Position numbers and translations under genes: made by a program. From Thecamonas trahens ATCC 50062 (lineage: Eukaryota; Protista; Apusomonadida), in NCBI RefSeq assembly GCF_000142905.1, contig NW_013657662.1:372001-436000 (forward strand): a DNA stretch of 64,000 nt, read 5' to 3'. Of the stretch, positions 7,156 through 41,169 are shown in pieces. Position 1 is the stretch's first letter, and every line of letters begins with the position of its first letter. A model generated the notes under the pieces. That model was not told the origin of the DNA. It searched no databases and was given only the letters and a program-made list of their open reading frames with translations.

Positions 7156-9231
7156 CTAGCGGAAGCCCTCCATAAGAGCGGCATCTTCGCGCTTTCCGGC
7201 TGGGCCGGATGCGGCGGCGGCGTCGAGGTCATCGTAGCCGCCCGAGGGCACGCCCGAGCCGCAAGCTGGGCGGAAGGCAAGGTAGGCAGCGAGGGCGAGG
7301 CTGAGGATGCCGAGGGTGAGGCCGATACCAAATCCGACCTTTGCTCCGATGAGGGCGGCACGGATGGTGCGCTTGAACGAGTCTGCGTCCGAGTCGGAGA
7401 TGATACCGTCGCGGTGGATGGCGAGGAGTGGCCAAACGCCCGAGGCGGCGTGCGGGAAGAAGACCTGTGTCAGGTTCGAGTTGATGCGGGTGTTGATCTG
7501 AAGCTTGAGTGAGGCCCGGAAGGCGACGCCGGTCATGGGCTCGACGTCGAGAAAGGTTGAGTCGCGGCCGTAGTCGGGAGTGAGGCCGGCGGCGCGGGCC
7601 AGTTCGGGGTCGGCGTTGAGAAAGAATGGCTTTGAGATCTCAAGCGGGATGCCGTGGGAAATGGGCTCGATGTTGAAGAGACCGTAAACAGGCGAGACAT
7701 ACTGCTCGTTCGGTTGCAACTCTGCAGGATTGAGCCGGTACTCGAAGACCTCGATGCCCTTGACCTTGGTATCGCGGACGTGGAGGATCTGCAGCGGACG
7801 CTGGATCTCCGAGACAAAGACCTCAAGCGGCTGCGGTGGTCGGATGTCGGGACCGAACGAGTGGCCGTTGGTCCCGCGGACCGGGCCAGGCGGGGTGTAT
7901 GCAGAAACCTCGGTGAGACCGTTCCACTGCAGGTAGGTGTTGAGCGCAGCGAGGTTGCCCTTGCCGGTGGCGGTGATGGTGTCGCGCTTGGTGGCGCGGG
8001 TGATGTTGGCCGATGTGTCGTTGAACTGGAGATGGGCGAGGTGGGCGATAGACGGGTCGAGAGCAGCAAGGAGCGGGTCCTCGTACTGCCACAGCCACTG
8101 CTCGACGGTGTGGGTGACGATGAGGCCGGTGCCGCGGCCTCCCTGGAAGAAGACCTGCTCGGCAAAGTCGAGGCCGCGAACGAGAATGAGGTGCTCAAAG
8201 TAGGCGGCGAGGGTGAGGACATTGTCCGGGGTGCCGAGCTCGGGCCACTTGGCGAGGATGGAGCCGATGTCCTGGCGGGCGAGGAGGCCAAGGAAGGTGG
8301 TCACAGCGGTTTCGTCTGAGATGAGGCCCGAGGCGCCAAAGAGGAGCGAATGGGTGGCGGCGAGGTCGAGCGAGATGTTGCGGACAGGCGGGGCGCGGAG
8401 CTCGAGAGAGGGCAGCGATGGGAGGTTGGCGCCGGTGATGCCGAGCGAGCCCCACTGGATCATGGCGGCGGTGGTGTTGTCCGCGTTGCCGAGGTGGCCG
8501 CCGATCTCGGAGAGTGTGATCGAAAGGAGGGTGGGCAGGAAGCCGTAGAGGAGGTTCTTCTCAGAACCGGCCTTGTTGACTGCGGCCTGGTAGAAGGGAA
8601 AGTAGTTGGTGAGGAGAACCTTGTCGAGCTGATCGTAGATGGACTGTTCCGGCACAAACGAGTACTGCGACATCTCCTTGAACGAGACCCGAGCGCCGCC
8701 ATCGAGGAACTTGGGGTCAAGCTTGACTGTGTTGCGGCGGTAGACAAACGGGCCGACGGGCTCAAAGACCGGCGCCGCGCCGGCCAGTACGTCGGGTGCG
8801 TTCGTCAGGTTGAAGAAGGTGTACGACTGGAGCTCCGAGTTGCCCGAGTGGTAGGACGAGACCCAGTTGTCATAGCCAGACGAGTTGGGCGAGTCGATGA
8901 CCACCGCATCCTGTGTGACGAGGGTGGGTGGGTGGGGGAGGGGAGGGGGGAAGTACGTGAGTGTGAGTGTGGGTGGCGGGGAGAAGGGAGAGGGTGGTTT
9001 GGTGGTGGAGGTGGCGGCGGGAGCGAGTGAGTCACGCGGCACGTCGTCAGCATGGGCCGGAGGACTGGGGACAGGAGGCAAGCGGCAGTCACCGGGGGGA
9101 CTTACGTTGATCTTCTTCTGGACGAGGTAGGGGATGAGGAGGTAGACAGTGGTGGCAGCAGCAATGAGCAGGAGTCCGGCCACGCATGCGGTGATGCCGA
9201 CAGCCTTGCGGCGAGTCTGCAGAATGTGCAT
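7156..9231 (-). CDS. CD36/SCARB (LIMP-2-like) scavenger receptor; intron 8911-9105
   Basis: N- and C-terminal TM. Motifs FFNLTNAPDVLAGAAP..VGPFVYR, GTNGHSF, FLDVEPMTG..LQIN. GTAAGT..ACAG intron removes a Pro-rich in-frame insert. Confidence 0.9.
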   Translation of the reverse strand: MHILQTRRKAVGITACVAGLLLIAAATTVYLLIPYLVQKKINVSPPGDCRLPPVPSPPAHADDVPRDSLAPAATSTTKPPSPFSPPPTLTLTYFPPPLPHPPTLVTQDAVVIDSPNSSGYDNWVSSYHSGNSELQSYTFFNLTNAPDVLAGAAPVFEPVGPFVYRRNTVKLDPKFLDGGARVSFKEMSQYSFVPEQSIYDQLDKVLLTNYFPFYQAAVNKAGSEKNLLYGFLPTLLSITLSEIGGHLGNADNTTAAMIQWGSLGITGANLPSLPSLELRAPPVRNISLDLAATHSLLFGASGLISDETAVTTFLGLLARQDIGSILAKWPELGTPDNVLTLAAYFEHLILVRGLDFAEQVFFQGGRGTGLIVTHTVEQWLWQYEDPLLAALDPSIAHLAHLQFNDTSANITRATKRDTITATGKGNLAALNTYLQWNGLTEVSAYTPPGPVRGTNGHSFGPDIRPPQPLEVFVSEIQRPLQILHVRDTKVKGIEVFEYRLNPAELQPNEQYVSPVYGLFNIEPISHGIPLEISKPFFLNADPELARAAGLTPDYGRDSTFLDVEPMTGVAFRASLKLQINTRINSNLTQVFFPHAASGVWPLLAIHRDGIISDSDADSFKRTIRAALIGAKVGFGIGLTLGILSLALAAYLAFRPACGSGVPSGGYDDLDAAAASGPAGKREDAALMEGFR

Positions 9232-37125: not shown

Positions 37126-37421
37126 GGTGTCTGGGTGGGGGTGGGGTGGGGTGGGGCGGCAGTGGCAGTGGCAGTGGTCTTGGCAGAGGCGGCGGGGGTG
37201 GTCGTGGGTGCGAGGGTTGGGGGATTCGAGATCGGGGGGGGGGGGGGTGGGACACGGGGTGGAGATGATGGTTGGAGAAAGTTGATCTTAGGGGCTCTTG
37301 GTGGTTGTGCTTGTGGTGGCGGTAGGATGGGTAGGAGGAGGTGAGAGGAGCTGACGAGGGAAGGGTGCGCGCGCAAGTGACCGATGGGGATAAGGGCGGA
37401 TACAGCGGGTGCACTTTCAAC

Positions 37422-37504
37422 GACGGCATGGCGAAATGGTAGACGCGCTAGCTTAGAAAGCGTGTGTCCGAGAGGACGTGGAGGTTCGAGTCCTTCTGCC
37501 GTCG
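37422..37504 (+). tRNA. Class II tRNA, anticodon AGA (Ser), tRNA-Leu-like body; weak anticodon stem, possible pseudogene or chimera
   Basis: Acceptor GACGGCA/TGCCGTC; anticodon at 37455-37457 in loop TT-AGA-AA; stem CTAGC/GCGTG only 3 of 5 paired; T-arm GGAGG-TTCGAGT-CCTTC. Confidence 0.65.
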
Positions 37505-37512
37505 ATCAGAGT

Positions 37513-37542
37513 GGTGCCGCCTTTGGGTGGTGCCTTCGTTTT
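37513..37542 (+). terminator. Hairpin plus T-tract after the tRNA, repeated after every copy
   Basis: GGTGCCGCC-TTTG-GGTGGTGCC followed by TTCGTTTT. The last copy has a TTCG loop. Confidence 0.6.
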
Positions 37543-37614
37543 GGCTTCGTCACAACCCTCGCGGTGGCAGCGCCGACAGCGATAAGAGGCACCGAAGGCG
37601 ACAGATCTTTCAAC

Positions 37615-37698
37615 GACGGCATGGCGAAATTGGTAAACGCGCACGTTTTGAAAGCGTGTATCAGAGATGATGTGGAGGTTCGAGTCCCTCTGCCGTCG
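37615..37698 (+). tRNA. Class II tRNA, anticodon TGA (Ser), tRNA-Leu-like body
   Basis: Anticodon stem CACGT/GCGTG fully paired, TGA at 37649-37651. Variable arm TATCA-GAGA-TGATG. One A-C mismatch in the T-stem. Confidence 0.75.
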
Positions 37699-37808
37699 AT
37701 CAGAGCGGTGCCGCCTTTGGGTGGCGCCTTCGTTTTGGCTTCGTCACAACCCTCGCGGTGGCAGCGCCGACAGCGATAAGAGGCACCGAAGGCGACAGAT
37801 CTTTCAAC

Positions 37809-37892
37809 GACGGCATGGCGAAATTGGTAGACGCGCCTGCTTCGAAAGCACGTGTCCGAGAGGACGTGGAGGTTCGAGTCCTTCTGCCGTCG
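37809..37892 (+). tRNA. Class II tRNA, anticodon CGA (Ser), tRNA-Leu-like body
   Basis: CCTGC-TT-CGA-AA-GCACG (4 of 5 pairs), CGA at 37843-37845. Variable arm TGTCC-GAGA-GGACG. Intact A and B boxes. Confidence 0.75.
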
Positions 37893-38002
37893 ATCAGAGC
37901 GGTGCCGCCTTTGGGTGGCGCCTTCGTTTTGGCTTCGTCACAACCCTCGCGGTGGCAGCGCCGACAGCGATAAGAGGCACCGAAGGCGACAGATCTTTCA
38001 AC

Positions 38003-38086
38003 GACGGCATGGCGAAATTGGTAGACGCGCCTGCTTCGAAAGCACGTGTCCGAGAGGACGTGGAGGTTCGAGTCCTTCTGCCGTCG
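38003..38086 (+). tRNA. Class II tRNA, anticodon CGA (Ser), tRNA-Leu-like body; identical to the previous copy
   Basis: Same sequence as 37809-37892; CGA at 38037-38039. Confidence 0.75.
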
Positions 38087-38205
38087 ATCAGAGCGGTGCC
38101 GCCTTCGGGTGGTGCCTTCGTTTTGGCTTCGTCACAACCCTCGCCCGCAAAAGGCGACCAGATGGCAAGGAAAGACGCCGTGTTCACAACAACTTGGGCT
38201 CAGGA

Positions 38206-41169
38206 TCACATGTTGAGCGACTCAAAGAGCGCAAGCATGTCCTTCACGGACCGCTTGCGCACCGTCGACTCGGCGGCGGCAACAGCAGCCTCGTCACGTC
38301 GCTCGGCAAGCGTCCGCGGCTTGAGAGGAGGCTGGGGACGCCGGGAAGGAGAATCTTCTCCGGGTACTTCGCTTGCTTGGTCCAAATTCGACGCAGCTGG
38401 AGGTGACGATGATGACGATGATGATGATGATGACGATGGAGATGATGACGACGACGACGACGACGACGATGACGATGACGATGCCGCAGTCGATGGCGTG
38501 GCCGATCGTGCCAATGAAGTGGGCGAGGTCGGATGAGACCGATCTGCTGGGCGGAACACGTCGTTGATGTTAGGACGCGGTGGACGCGGCGGGCGGGTCG
38601 GTGCAGCTGGGGCAGTGCGGGATGCGTTTTGTGCGGCGGCAAGCGCACGGAGCGACCGCGCCGACTCGCGCAGCGCTGCCATGGTCCGCGACTGCTGCTG
38701 CGCTGCCGCAATCGAGATTCGCCGCTGGCCGCCGATCTTGACAAACTCGGCAGACATCTCCTCCTCCACATCAACGACCGAGATGCGGCGCGAGCGGCGG
38801 CCGGGGAGCTGCGGCGAGCCCGGCCGCGACGGCGGCAGCGGCAGGACAACCGGTGGTGCAAACTCGGGATTGTCCCAGCCATCCTTGGCGGGCGCGTCGT
38901 CAAACTGGTTTTCCAGCTCAAACACCACACGCGAGAACGGAGGGCGGTCCTTAGCATAGTACGCCGCACACGCCAGCGCCAGCGCCATGAACGCCTCGGG
39001 GGTTGACTTGGGCGCAGCCGCTCGAACGTTGGCAGCATTCAGTTCGAAGCACTCCATCGGCTTCCGGCAGATCTTCGGATCCGACGGCTTGAGCCGGGTA
39101 ATCAGCTCCACGAGTACAATGCCAAAGGAAAAGACATCAACCGCAAGGTCGTAGTTCTCCCCAAGCGTCAGCTCGGGCGCCATCCACTCATCTGTTCCAC
39201 ACATTGTCATCCGCCGCAGCTTGCGCTTCGAGTTGGGTGTCAGCTTGGCGTCGCCGGGCGTCGGCACCTCTTCCATCACCTTGGCAAAGCCAAAGTCAGC
39301 GACCTTGCAGTGGAACTCGGCGTCGACCAGCACGTTGGCCGACTTGAGATCACGGTGCATCATCGAGTTGTCGTGCAGGTACTCCATCGCAGACGCAATC
39401 TCAAACGCAAACCGCAGCCGCAGCTTCCACGACAGATCCGCCGATGTGTTCTCGATCCATGTCTCGAGGTCATTGTTCGGCACCAGTTCGGTGAGAACCC
39501 AGAGGCCAGCCGAGCCGGCCGAAGTGACGCCAACAAACCGCAGGATGTGCGGATGAACAAGCTGCTTGAGGATGGCGATCTCGCGCTTGAGGAAGGTCTT
39601 TGTCTGTTCGTCTTGCGGGAGAGCCATCTTCTTGACCGCCACAGTCTCTCCACGGTACTCGCCGCGATAGACCTTGGAGAACATGCCCTTACCCAGCTCC
39701 TCAAACAGCTCCACCTCATCCTCGCGTATGAGCCACTCGTCATTCCCGGCGTAGACATCTGTCTCGGCCTGGGCCGATGTGTCTTCGGGGGAACACGGAG
39801 CACGAGCTTCAACATCGGCATCCGACGACGGCGAGACCAGCGGCGAGTTGTTTGCAGACCGCGTGGCCGTCTCGAGTGCAGTGTGGAGCAGCGGCTTCAT
39901 CGCCGACCGGCGACGCGACTTGCGGCGCGAGTTTTGGATCATGCCCACTCGCCCGAGCGGGTTGGCCGACGACGACAGCATGACCGAGACCCGCCGGCCG
40001 GACTCGAGCTGCAGAAACTCGGACGAGTTGCGCTCCTCAGCGTCGATGACTGAGATGCGCCGCGAAGCCCGCCGCAGTGCCTTGGCCTCTTCCGCTCGCA
40101 GCGGCACTACAGGCTCCAAGACTGGCGGCGTGTAGTCGGGCTCGTCCCACCGCTCGACAGCCGCGGCGTCGTCAAACTGGCCCTCTAGCTCGTACACCAC
40201 ACGCGAGAACTCGGGCCGGTCCTTTGGATAGTATGCCGCGCAGGCAAACGCCAGATCCATAAACATCTCTGGTGTATCGTCCGGCGACGCCAGCAGCACT
40301 CGTGACTTGTTGAGCTCAAAGCACTCCATCGGCGTCCGACAGATCTTCGGATCCGACGGCTTGAGCCGGGTGATCAGCTCCACGAGTACAATGCCGAACG
40401 AGAAGACGTCGACAGAGAGGTCGTAGTCCTCGCCTAGCGTCAACTCGGGCGCCATCCAGTCGTCTGTTCCGCACATCGTCATCCGCGCGCTGTCCCCGCC
40501 CCCAGTATCGCCTAGAACCTTGGCAAAGCCAAAGTCAGCGACCTTGCAGTGGAACTCGGCGTCGACCAGCACGTTGGCCGACTTGAGATCACGGTGCATC
40601 ATCGAGTTGTCGTGCAGGTACTCCATCGCAGACGCAATCTCAAACGCAAACCGTAGCCGCAGCTTCCACGACAGATCCGCCGATGTGTTCTCGATCCATG
40701 TCTCGAGGTCATTGTTCGGCACCAGTTCGGTGAGAACCCAGAGGCCAGCCGAGCCGGCCGAAGTGACGCCAACAAACCGCAGGATGTGCGGATGAACAAG
40801 CTGCTTGAGGATGGCGATCTCGCGCTTGAGGAAGGTCTTTGTCTGTTCGTCTTGCGGGAGAGCCATCTTCTTGACCGCCACAGTCTCTCCACGGTACTCG
40901 CCACGATAGACCTTGGAGAACATGCCATGACCTACCCCCTCCCCCAACACCCCCATCCATAGCAACTTCATAAGTGTCCTGCTGTCTGCCGTGTCCCCTA
41001 CCCTCCCACCGTTGCTTGGCGTGGGCATGGGCGGTGGCTCAGGTGCCACCACCCCCCCGTCGACCCCCCGCCCCCACCCCCCCCACCCCGTCCCCATGTC
41101 CATACCCAGCTCTTCAAACACATCCACCTCATCCTCTGTAATGAGCCAGGGGTCGGGCGGGACGTCCAT
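38206..41169 (-). CDS. Dual-domain tyrosine-kinase-like (LIMK/TESK-like) protein kinase; intron 40932-41105
   Basis: Two complete kinase domains (G.GMFSKVY, VAVKK, HRDLKSANVL, DFG, CGT..WMAPE). GTATGG..GTAG intron restores ELGHGMF. Confidence 0.9.
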   Translation of the reverse strand: MDVPPDPWLITEDEVDVFEELGMDMGTGWGGWGRGVDGGVVAPEPPPMPTPSNGGRVGDTADSRTLMKLLWMGVLGEGVGHGMFSKVYRGEYRGETVAVKKMALPQDEQTKTFLKREIAILKQLVHPHILRFVGVTSAGSAGLWVLTELVPNNDLETWIENTSADLSWKLRLRFAFEIASAMEYLHDNSMMHRDLKSANVLVDAEFHCKVADFGFAKVLGDTGGGDSARMTMCGTDDWMAPELTLGEDYDLSVDVFSFGIVLVELITRLKPSDPKICRTPMECFELNKSRVLLASPDDTPEMFMDLAFACAAYYPKDRPEFSRVVYELEGQFDDAAAVERWDEPDYTPPVLEPVVPLRAEEAKALRRASRRISVIDAEERNSSEFLQLESGRRVSVMLSSSANPLGRVGMIQNSRRKSRRRSAMKPLLHTALETATRSANNSPLVSPSSDADVEARAPCSPEDTSAQAETDVYAGNDEWLIREDEVELFEELGKGMFSKVYRGEYRGETVAVKKMALPQDEQTKTFLKREIAILKQLVHPHILRFVGVTSAGSAGLWVLTELVPNNDLETWIENTSADLSWKLRLRFAFEIASAMEYLHDNSMMHRDLKSANVLVDAEFHCKVADFGFAKVMEEVPTPGDAKLTPNSKRKLRRMTMCGTDEWMAPELTLGENYDLAVDVFSFGIVLVELITRLKPSDPKICRKPMECFELNAANVRAAAPKSTPEAFMALALACAAYYAKDRPPFSRVVFELENQFDDAPAKDGWDNPEFAPPVVLPLPPSRPGSPQLPGRRSRRISVVDVEEEMSAEFVKIGGQRRISIAAAQQQSRTMAALRESARSLRALAAAQNASRTAPAAPTRPPRPPRPNINDVFRPADRSHPTSPTSLARSATPSTAASSSSSSSSSSSSSSPSSSSSSSSSSSPPAASNLDQASEVPGEDSPSRRPQPPLKPRTLAERRDEAAVAAAESTVRKRSVKDMLALFESLNM

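Follow-up and report, generated by a model that had tools for sequence, protein, structure and literature searches.

A tandem array of putative second-family serine tRNA genes of probable foreign ancestry in the protist Thecamonas trahens

Which amino acid is carried by a tRNA that combines the body of a bacterial tRNA-Leu with the anticodons of serine? This question is raised by a tandem array of four tRNA genes at positions 37414-38144 of a 64,000-nucleotide stretch of the Thecamonas trahens ATCC 50062 genome (here called the window; contig C18:372001-436000 of an assembly of 28.7 Mb and roughly 63% GC). An earlier reading of this DNA, made from the letters alone (the sequence-only reading), had proposed that a foreign leucine scaffold was given serine anticodons and was either recruited as tRNA-Ser or inserts leucine at serine codons. 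Our analysis indicates that the array genes are most likely working, naturalised serine tRNAs of foreign ancestry. We consider it probable that they are four RNA polymerase III (Pol III) genes for a second family of serine tRNAs, named type 2 in the following, which derive from a foreign source and are charged by a seryl-tRNA synthetase (SerRS).

ARAGORN called four class II tRNA genes on the plus strand, all of them tRNA-Ser, with the anticodons AGA, TGA, CGA and CGA. Each scored 44-52 bits with the Rfam model RF00005 (cut-off 29 bits), and Tandem Repeats Finder (TRF) described positions 37414-38144 as 3.8 copies of a period of 194 bp with 94% matches. The four class II cloverleaves, their spacing and their anticodons, all noted in the sequence-only reading, are thereby confirmed. 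The same holds for the features it saw shared between the copies: all four have the acceptor stem GACGGCA/TGCCGTC, the D arm GGCGAAAT(T)GGTAGACGC, the T loop GGTTCGAGTCC and a long variable arm, and none encodes CCA. The variable region of 15 nt forms a 4-bp stem with a GAGA loop, and three compensatory pair changes maintain this stem. The coordinates are collected in Table 1.

To compare isotypes, we combined blastn searches against Escherichia coli, a bacterial motif census and a tree, which is described below. When the CGA copy was searched in 5,426 E. coli genomes, the best matches listed were tRNA-Leu genes only, with 75-80% identity over positions 8-76. An alignment of the first copy with annotated E. 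coli tRNA-Leu showed that the D arm through GCGCTAGCTT, the variable arm and the T arm are nearly the same, and the likeness to tRNA-Leu(CAG) noted in the sequence-only reading is real. For the census, bacterial and archaeal genomes (one per species) were searched for this D arm together with the T loop motif, which resulted in at least 120 loci. Among the 120 loci listed, 117 gave tRNA-Leu and three gave no call; the 118 tRNA-Leu genes that were readable (one locus holds two) cover five Leu anticodons and have A73 without exception (118/118), and not one tRNA-Ser was present. All three comparisons agree that the body is of the bacterial tRNA-Leu kind. The type-2 genes match the D arm GGCG(A/G)AAT(T)GGTAGACGC with the A15:U48 pair and the GGTTCRAGTCC T loop of bacterial tRNA-Leu, but depart from it in having G73 instead of A73 and, in all five genes of the family, Ser instead of Leu (NAG, YAA) anticodons. 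The same Leu-like D arm is combined with G73 in a tRNA-Ser(CGA) on a metagenome contig of 33% GC (Ga0233431_1000680, 8206-8289, minus strand; L177) that is prokaryotic and probably archaeal (SecDF, AglB/STT3). Because this tRNA-Ser has the same D arm, the Leu-like scaffold appears not to be Leu-specific outside Bacteria.

The array genes are not the ordinary tRNA-Ser genes of this genome, since normal eukaryote-type genes cover the same anticodons. Genome-wide tRNA searches, in which only the best candidates were scored and gene counts are thus lower bounds, identified a eukaryote-type set (type 1) with the D arm GGCCGAGTGGTTAAGGCG, consisting of two CGA genes on contig C57 and one gene each for TGA (C59), GCT (C23) and AGA (C25). 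The AGA gene on C25 (about 90300-90480, minus strand; L043) has an intron of ~100 nt after position 37, the canonical site; it is the only eukaryote-type AGA gene found, and its intron is unusually long for a tRNA. None of the type-2 genes has the D arm of type 1. A fifth type-2 member, tRNA-Ser(GCT), is located on another contig (C62:26596-26678) and shares the acceptor stem and G73, and a covariance model built from the five genes found no further member in the genome. The family therefore consists of at least five genes, AGA, UGA and CGA (twice) in the window and GCU on C62, and the genome has two parallel tRNA-Ser sets that agree in their anticodons and in the number of copies found for each. 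To our knowledge, no eukaryote has been reported to maintain, for a single amino acid, two complete nuclear tRNA sets that differ in structure. The native tRNA-Leu genes (CAG, AAG, TAA, CAA) are eukaryote-type and have A73. The mitochondrial gene cox1 was not found in the assembly, which indicates that no mitochondrial contig is present there.

About 300 bp from the type-2 GCT gene lies a tRNA-Leu(CAA) gene (C62:26217-26299, plus strand; L047:18-100) with a 57-nt trailer before its T-run. Its D arm had suggested a bacterial tRNA-Tyr-like gene; this assignment was rejected, as a similar native copy is present on C1, and the gene appears to be a variant of the eukaryotic tRNA-Leu(CAA) type.

Relatives of type 2 were found by scanning metagenomes for the type-2 D arm followed by an NGA anticodon loop, which recovered 26 genuine tRNAs with Ser anticodons. 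The ~100 further matches were false positives; where read, they proved to be bacterial tRNA-Leu(UAA) genes that an intron splits directly after U34. This intron, present in many such genes from soil and freshwater (among L171-L285), starts with GAAA, has a conserved TTGAGC-type core and is presumably the known tRNA-Leu group I intron.

The closest relatives of type 2 have the acceptor stem GACGGCG/CGCCGTC, G73 and no CCA, and they lie in dense tRNA arrays. A 505-kb contig listed as viral in IMG/VR (uncultivated virus genome UViG 3300027828_000445; L235, L237, L287, L313) carries 35 tRNAs, a second locus (L259) has an array of 22 tRNAs, and an AT-rich contig of 77.5 kb (L182) has five class II tRNAs; giant-virus-like contigs with related tRNA-Ser also include JADMIO011197716.1. 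Short class I tRNA-Tyr genes and A34 anticodons (AGA, AAG, AGC) are found in these arrays, both of which we read as eukaryote-style traits. The 22 kb round the large array encode ORFans, a Ras-family GTPase, a DHFR-TS fusion, DUF5891, DUF5770, a GIY-YIG nuclease and an endonuclease VII-like protein. One protein near this array is filed under 'viral metagenome' in UniRef, and neither a capsid nor a polymerase gene was seen in the 22 kb read. The label 'giant-virus-like' is thus well-supported, without amounting to proof. Identity between type 2 and the tRNAs of these arrays reaches 78-84%, the highest of 49 distinct host tRNAs, compared to 66-71% for type-1 Ser and 60-75% for most other host tRNAs. 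Within a viral array, tRNA-Leu genes with A73 and tRNA-Ser genes with G73 stand side by side and carry the same Leu-like D arm, so that one scaffold apparently serves both identities while N73 and the acceptor stem differ.

The discriminator base N73 depends on the register in which the acceptor stem is read. ARAGORN chose a register with an 8-bp stem and an A discriminator, which is possible in the array only: it needs a C at position -1, and that C is found nowhere but in the homogenised array spacer. At this position, the GCT gene on C62 and the viral relatives carry an A, which cannot pair with G73. Because the fifth member and the viral relatives are without a pairing base at -1, we take the conserved register to be a 7-bp acceptor stem followed by G73, a base that is kept in all five type-2 genes and in the viral relatives.

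Eukaryotic Ser identity is set by G73 together with the large variable region, whatever the anticodon; an A73-to-G73 change converts Leu to Ser identity in several contexts, and G73 acts as an antideterminant for leucyl-tRNA synthetase (LeuRS) in E. coli and Haloferax, the systems tested (PMC9976931). The type-2 genes have the long variable arm, G73 and the anticodons of both the UCN and the AGY box. As N73, the major discriminating element of class II tRNAs, and the anticodons are both serine-type, the genes do not have the mismatch that defines an identity-swapped tRNA. In addition, one family unites a GCU (AGY) member with UCN members, and serine is the sole identity that links both boxes. 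We therefore read the type-2 genes as serine tRNAs, with their charging inferred from these features, and recruitment as tRNA-Ser with G73, the first of the two options given in the sequence-only reading, fits everything tested.

The second option was that LeuRS leucylates the type-2 tRNAs, recognising either the Leu-like core or an 8-bp stem that exposes A74, and that leucine is inserted at UCN codons, constitutively or under certain conditions. The core does match bacterial tRNA-Leu, the C at -1 in the array could pair with G73 and leave an A unpaired, and Leu-bodied A73 tRNAs with CCA and Ser anticodons do occur in metagenomes. Against this stand the conserved G73 and the absence of the -1:73 pair from the GCU copy and the viral relatives, as LeuRS requires A73 and is blocked by G73 where this was tested (PMC9976931). 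Furthermore, a GCU member makes sense for serine only, the native substrates of LeuRS are eukaryote-type tRNA-Leu with A73, and the viral array pairs the same body with A73 where the anticodons are Leu and with G73 where they are Ser. Codon usage points in the same direction. In six open reading frames (ORFs) of the window, Ser accounts for 9.5% of the codons, and UCG is the commonest Ser codon (49%), which fits the doubled CGA gene in both sets. Given this share and a gene dosage equal to that of the normal set, a Leu-charging family would impose a very heavy Leu load and would be very costly. Leucine at serine codons is thus very unlikely, including the forms of conditional mistranslation and of an antiviral codon swap that had been considered, both opposed by G73, the GCU member and the A73/G73 split of the viral array.

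Seven metagenome loci (L209, L248, L290, L183, L257, L271, L205) hold tRNAs with a bacterial tRNA-Leu body, A73 and Ser anticodons (AGA, TGA, GGA); several of them encode CCA, and one (L290) sits on a viral contig. As they keep the leucine discriminator, these tRNAs are more plausible candidates than the array genes for molecules that truly decode Ser codons as Leu, in bacteria or phages.

If the type-2 tRNAs are serine tRNAs, a SerRS would charge them with serine, and they could read the complete UCN box: A34, presumably edited to inosine, would read UCU and UCC, UGA would read UCA and CGA would read UCG. The family would then double the tRNA-Ser gene dosage of the eukaryote-type set. Decoding and expression are, like charging, inferred.

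The flanking signals of the array are of the host type. The boxes upstream of the tRNAs match those of native tRNA-Ala(AGC) genes in kind and distance, and the B box GGTTCGAGTCC is perfect in the type-2 array genes. In most native tRNA genes, a T-run begins within 0-7 nt of the tRNA end and the element ACCCT follows exactly 12 nt after it; in the array, ACCCT lies exactly 12 nt after the TTTT in all four units. Across about 50 tRNA loci of this genome (L001-L047, L292-L312), almost all genes have ACCCT at this distance, usually in the form T-run, GC, ~10 nt and (C/G/A)ACCCT, so that the element downstream of the terminator is genome-wide. Between tRNA and T-run, each array unit has a trailer that folds into a hairpin of -17.5 to -22.8 kcal/mol (z -3.5 to -4.9). 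An equivalent hairpin trailer is present at the unlinked GCT gene on C62, and a few native tRNA genes (His, Ala-TGC) also have hairpin trailers.

Sequence differences between the copies indicate constraint on the tRNA bodies. Among the four distinct type-2 sequences, compensatory double changes affect six base pairs, of which the variable stem has three, the anticodon stem two and the T stem one, and 94.8% of the cells are paired, compared to 31-51% in controls with the partners slid by 1-3 columns. Between units 2 and 3, 12 of the 84 tRNA positions differ but none of the 110 spacer positions (Fisher p = 2.7e-5). With differences located in the tRNA bodies rather than the spacers, the pattern is the opposite of neutral decay.

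Contamination or misassembly, in which DNA of bacterial or viral origin was wrongly attached to a eukaryotic contig, would explain the bacterial-like body, and the assembled contigs of public runs (Logan), which served as read support, do not cover the whole array. Nevertheless, a DNA contig from T. trahens' own runs spans 37292-37614, and DNA contigs from an estuary metagenome span 37250-37701 and 37977-38089. These contigs link the unique upstream flank to the first array units, joining it to tRNA 1 and the spacer, and the tie between the array and the flanking eukaryotic sequence, on which the sequence-only reading depended, holds. The neighbouring ORFs are eukaryotic (a dual protein kinase, a C2/SMP/PH protein and a protein binding cyclic nucleotide monophosphates, cNMP), the GC content of the array is that of its surroundings, and every unit has the genome-specific ACCCT element at 12 nt and a host-type upstream box. 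CCA is not encoded, the AGA anticodon is a eukaryotic trait, and the fifth member lies on another contig. Because of the host-specific flanks, the second locus and the read contigs, we consider this explanation ruled out for practical purposes.

For the origin of the family, a maximum-likelihood (ML) tree was calculated from 71 class II tRNAs after removal of the anticodon and N73 columns, leaving 80 usable columns. In this tree, type 2 is monophyletic (support 99/92), nested among the tRNA-Ser of the giant-virus-like arrays (84/85) and contained in a clade with bacterial tRNA-Leu (98/99), with type-1 Ser and native Leu outside. The approximately unbiased (AU) test rejected a grouping of type 2 with all native class II tRNAs (p = 0.008), while a grouping with the viral-array Ser fits (p = 0.7). 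The type-2 family was thus probably not derived from native class II tRNAs. The neighbouring tRNA-Leu(CAA) gene on C62 groups with two tRNA-Leu genes of the L182 contig (99/96) and not with the native CAA gene on C1; two adjoining host genes on C62 thus have their nearest relatives on the same virus-like contig. The array itself contains Ser genes only, each with its own host-type Pol III signals, and lies between eukaryotic genes, unlike a multi-isotype viral tRNA array. As acceptor stem, G73 and body are shared with the viral-array tRNA-Ser, an exchange, in one direction or the other, between giant viruses and the apusomonad lineage appears likeliest and is the best-supported origin. The type-2 genes would have passed between giant viruses and this lineage, and would later have gained host-type promoter and terminator signals and been amplified in tandem. 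Of the proposal of a foreign Leu scaffold, the foreign part is plausible, whereas the scaffold is not simply Leu: its nearest relatives are viral-array tRNA-Ser, and the same D arm occurs in the probably archaeal tRNA-Ser mentioned above.

Several points weigh against this reading of the array as functional serine tRNA genes exchanged with giant viruses. On the side of origin, grouping type 2 with bacterial Leu alone also fits in the AU test (p = 0.53), and grouping it with type-1 Ser alone is borderline (p = 0.051). The tree rests on only 80 columns, and many of its rows were chosen by the D-arm motif, which favours the grouping. A search of the T. trahens assembly for a capsid of nucleocytoplasmic large DNA viruses (NCLDV) gave no match, in a search without a positive control, and the probably archaeal tRNA-Ser of L177 makes a non-viral source of type 2 possible. 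On the side of function, three of the four distinct type-2 genes have a pyrimidine mismatch at pair 28:42, the anticodon stem of the AGA copy contains two adjacent mismatches, and the array terminator is a T4 only, 34 nt past the tRNA 3' end, compared to 0-7 nt in most native genes. Finally, the RNA data on type 2 consist of two metatranscriptome contigs that may be carried-over DNA. They span 37432-37694 (subsurface) and 37297-37516 (polyA seawater) and are no proof of transcription, because DNA carry-over is possible in such libraries and the contigs show no ends.

The functional points would also fit a relic that adds nothing to translation: a foreign tRNA cluster that was captured and is now decaying without function, or that was amplified in tandem recently. 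The AGA copy with its two mismatches and the lowest Rfam score, the recurrent 28:42 mismatch and the short, displaced T-run speak for it, and the type-1 set already covers every Ser anticodon. Such a relic would hardly be expected to maintain its cloverleaf by six compensatory pair changes, to collect differences in the tRNA bodies instead of the spacers, or to keep all four Ser anticodons, with CGA doubled in line with codon use and GCU at an unlinked locus. The ACCCT spacing of the host and the upstream box are moreover intact in every unit, and we regard a relic as unlikely. The anticodon arm of the AGA copy (37448-37464) is of a mixed kind: its 5' strand (CTAGC) is that of E. coli tRNA-Leu(CAG), its 3' strand is that of the adjoining UGA copy, and two mismatches result. 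This arm may be a gene-conversion chimera or the trace of an anticodon shift.

A further question is which SerRS would charge the type-2 tRNAs, as the genome encodes three. The enzyme on C40 matches cytoplasmic SerRS structures strongly (E 1e-151), and the one on C24 has mitochondrial SerRS as best match and a presequence-like N-terminus. The third gene (C63:168662-169909, minus strand; L048:481-1830) encodes a divergent protein (best PDB match E 1e-74) in which the N-terminal tRNA-binding domain and the class II core are intact and which lacks an N-terminal extension. Its best relative, with 46% identity, was found on marine contigs with eukaryote-like neighbouring genes. A viral origin of this enzyme was considered and rejected, as giant-virus SerRS are 28-36% identical and thus no closer than cellular ones.

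The type-2 tRNAs could be the preferred substrates of the C63 enzyme in a partly separate Ser system, or serve special uses such as mitochondrial import, translation specific to stress or infection, or non-ribosomal use of Ser-tRNA. The presence of three SerRS genes, the C63 one with an intact tRNA-binding N-domain and no presequence, the unusual co-occurrence of a duplicate tRNA-Ser set with an extra synthetase, and the eukaryote-like neighbourhood of its 46% relative would all suit this idea. Yet the enzyme is tied to the type-2 tRNAs by the shared genome alone, viral SerRS are no closer to it than cellular ones, and the contigs with the 46% relative carry no type-2 tRNA. A set of AGA, UGA, CGA and GCU with A34 suits cytosolic decoding and exceeds mitochondrial need, and eukaryotic SerRS accepts G73 class II tRNAs in varied contexts (PMC9976931). 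Altogether, we judge such a partly separate system or special use improbable, and the link of the C63 enzyme to type 2 is pure conjecture. The strictest version, two cytosolic serylation systems in which the ordinary SerRS serves type 1 and the C63 SerRS the virus-related type 2, is more doubtful still. If true, a eukaryote would have retained a naturally occurring synthetase-tRNA pair that came from a foreign source and is partly orthogonal. Such a pair might stand in whenever the standard tRNAs or the synthetase come under attack, e.g. from tRNA-cleaving defence or viral enzymes.

Table 1. Features of the type-2 tRNA-Ser array, in positions of the window
Feature	Position	Strand	Basis
Tandem array, 194-bp unit, 3.8 copies	37414..38144	+	TRF; sequence; flank comparison
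Each array unit: upstream TATA-like box, tRNA, trailer hairpin, T-run, ACCCT element		+	flank comparison
Type-2 tRNA-Ser(AGA), 83 nt	37422..37504	+	Rfam 44 bits, ARAGORN; weakest copy
AGA copy, anticodon-stem mismatches U28.U42 and A29.G41		+	pair counts
Type-2 tRNA-Ser(UGA), 84 nt	37615..37698	+	Rfam 52.2 bits
UGA copy, variable stem ATCA/TGAT, fully compensated relative to GTCC/GGAC of the other copies			covariation
Type-2 tRNA-Ser(CGA), 84 nt	37809..37892	+	Rfam 50 bits
Second type-2 tRNA-Ser(CGA), 84 nt	38003..38086	+	Rfam 50 bits; 0/84 differences from the CGA copy at 37809..37892
TATA-like box ATAAGGG, 32 nt before tRNA 1	37390..37396	+	sequence
Upstream box GATAAGAGG, from 34 nt before the tRNA, units 2-4	37581-37589, 37775-37783, 37969-37977	+	sequence
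3' trailer with stable hairpin	37505..37538; repeats 37699-37732, 37893-37926, 38087-38120	+	fold
Pol III terminator module: TTTT (37539-37542), 12-nt spacer, ACCCT (37555-37559)	37539..37559	+	
TTTT recurrences	37733-37736, 37927-37930, 38121-38124	+	

Two simple repeats lie close to the array. Upstream, a poly-G run of 14 nt occupies 37240-37253; downstream, an imperfect (TGA/TGACGA)n repeat of ~80 bp (38404-38483) falls inside the kinase ORF of the opposite strand, in its 3' part.

The type-2 family is of interest for the evolution of tRNA identity and for the origin and fate of viral tRNAs, and it is not a new genetic code. A second set of this kind suggests that a class II scaffold that is reserved for Leu in Bacteria can serve as tRNA-Ser once N73 is G, which would be an identity change by scaffold capture. 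The link to giant viruses bears on the open question of where viral tRNAs come from (PMC11946776), and type 2 may exemplify tRNA genes that move between giant viruses and a protist and are then fitted with host Pol III signals. Given its small size (five genes, three SerRS), the system lends itself to testing how tolerant eukaryotic SerRS is of foreign cores, and natural orthogonal class II pairs might be obtained from it. It also illustrates that scaffold likeness alone is an unsafe basis for calling mistranslation.

Type 2 can be compared with several known systems. Eukaryotic cytosolic tRNA-Ser, such as type 1, shares with it the class II long variable arm, G73, the absence of an encoded CCA, A36-A37-A38 in the UCN isoacceptors, the AGA/UGA/CGA/GCU anticodon set, the Pol III A and B boxes and host-type flanks. 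Unlike these tRNAs, type 2 has the D arm GGCGAAAT(T)GGTAGACGC in place of GGCCGAGTGGTTAAGGCG, the A15:U48 pair, a GAGA-looped variable stem of 4 bp and, ahead of the terminator, a hairpin trailer of 34 nt, and it falls outside the native class II tRNAs in the tree. Bacterial tRNA-Leu, e.g. E. coli tRNA-Leu(CAG), agrees with type 2 in D arm, variable arm, T arm and A15:U48, with 77-80% identity over positions 8-76, whereas G73, the Ser anticodons, another acceptor stem, the lack of CCA and the eukaryotic Pol III context set type 2 apart. The array tRNA-Ser of the giant-virus-like contigs come close in the acceptor stem (GACGGCG/CGCCGTC compared to GACGGCA/TGCCGTC) and agree in G73, the D arm, the lack of CCA and the AGA/UGA/CGA/GCU isoacceptor set, with 78-84% identity and a moderately supported grouping in the tree. 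Their genes, spaced by 3-60 nt, form polycistron-like arrays of 12-35 tRNAs within AT-rich DNA, while type 2 is GC-rich, has a promoter box and a terminator for each gene and comprises Ser members only (perhaps with one Leu).

The nematode nev-tRNAs (PMC3333845) and the tRNA-Ser(CAG) of the yeast CUG clade are likewise class II tRNAs whose anticodon is no guide to identity, as SerRS and LeuRS ignore the anticodon. In both of them identity elements and anticodon disagree; in type 2, G73 and the anticodons are both serine, and only the neutral scaffold is Leu-like. A parallel in terms of identity is provided by the A73G conversions of human tRNA-Leu (summarised in PMC9976931), in which a Leu-type class II body with a G discriminator becomes a serine acceptor. 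Those are engineered single mutants studied in vitro, whereas type 2 is a natural family with several genes and anticodons that is known from sequence. By analogy, the type-2 family may be the natural counterpart of these classic conversions.

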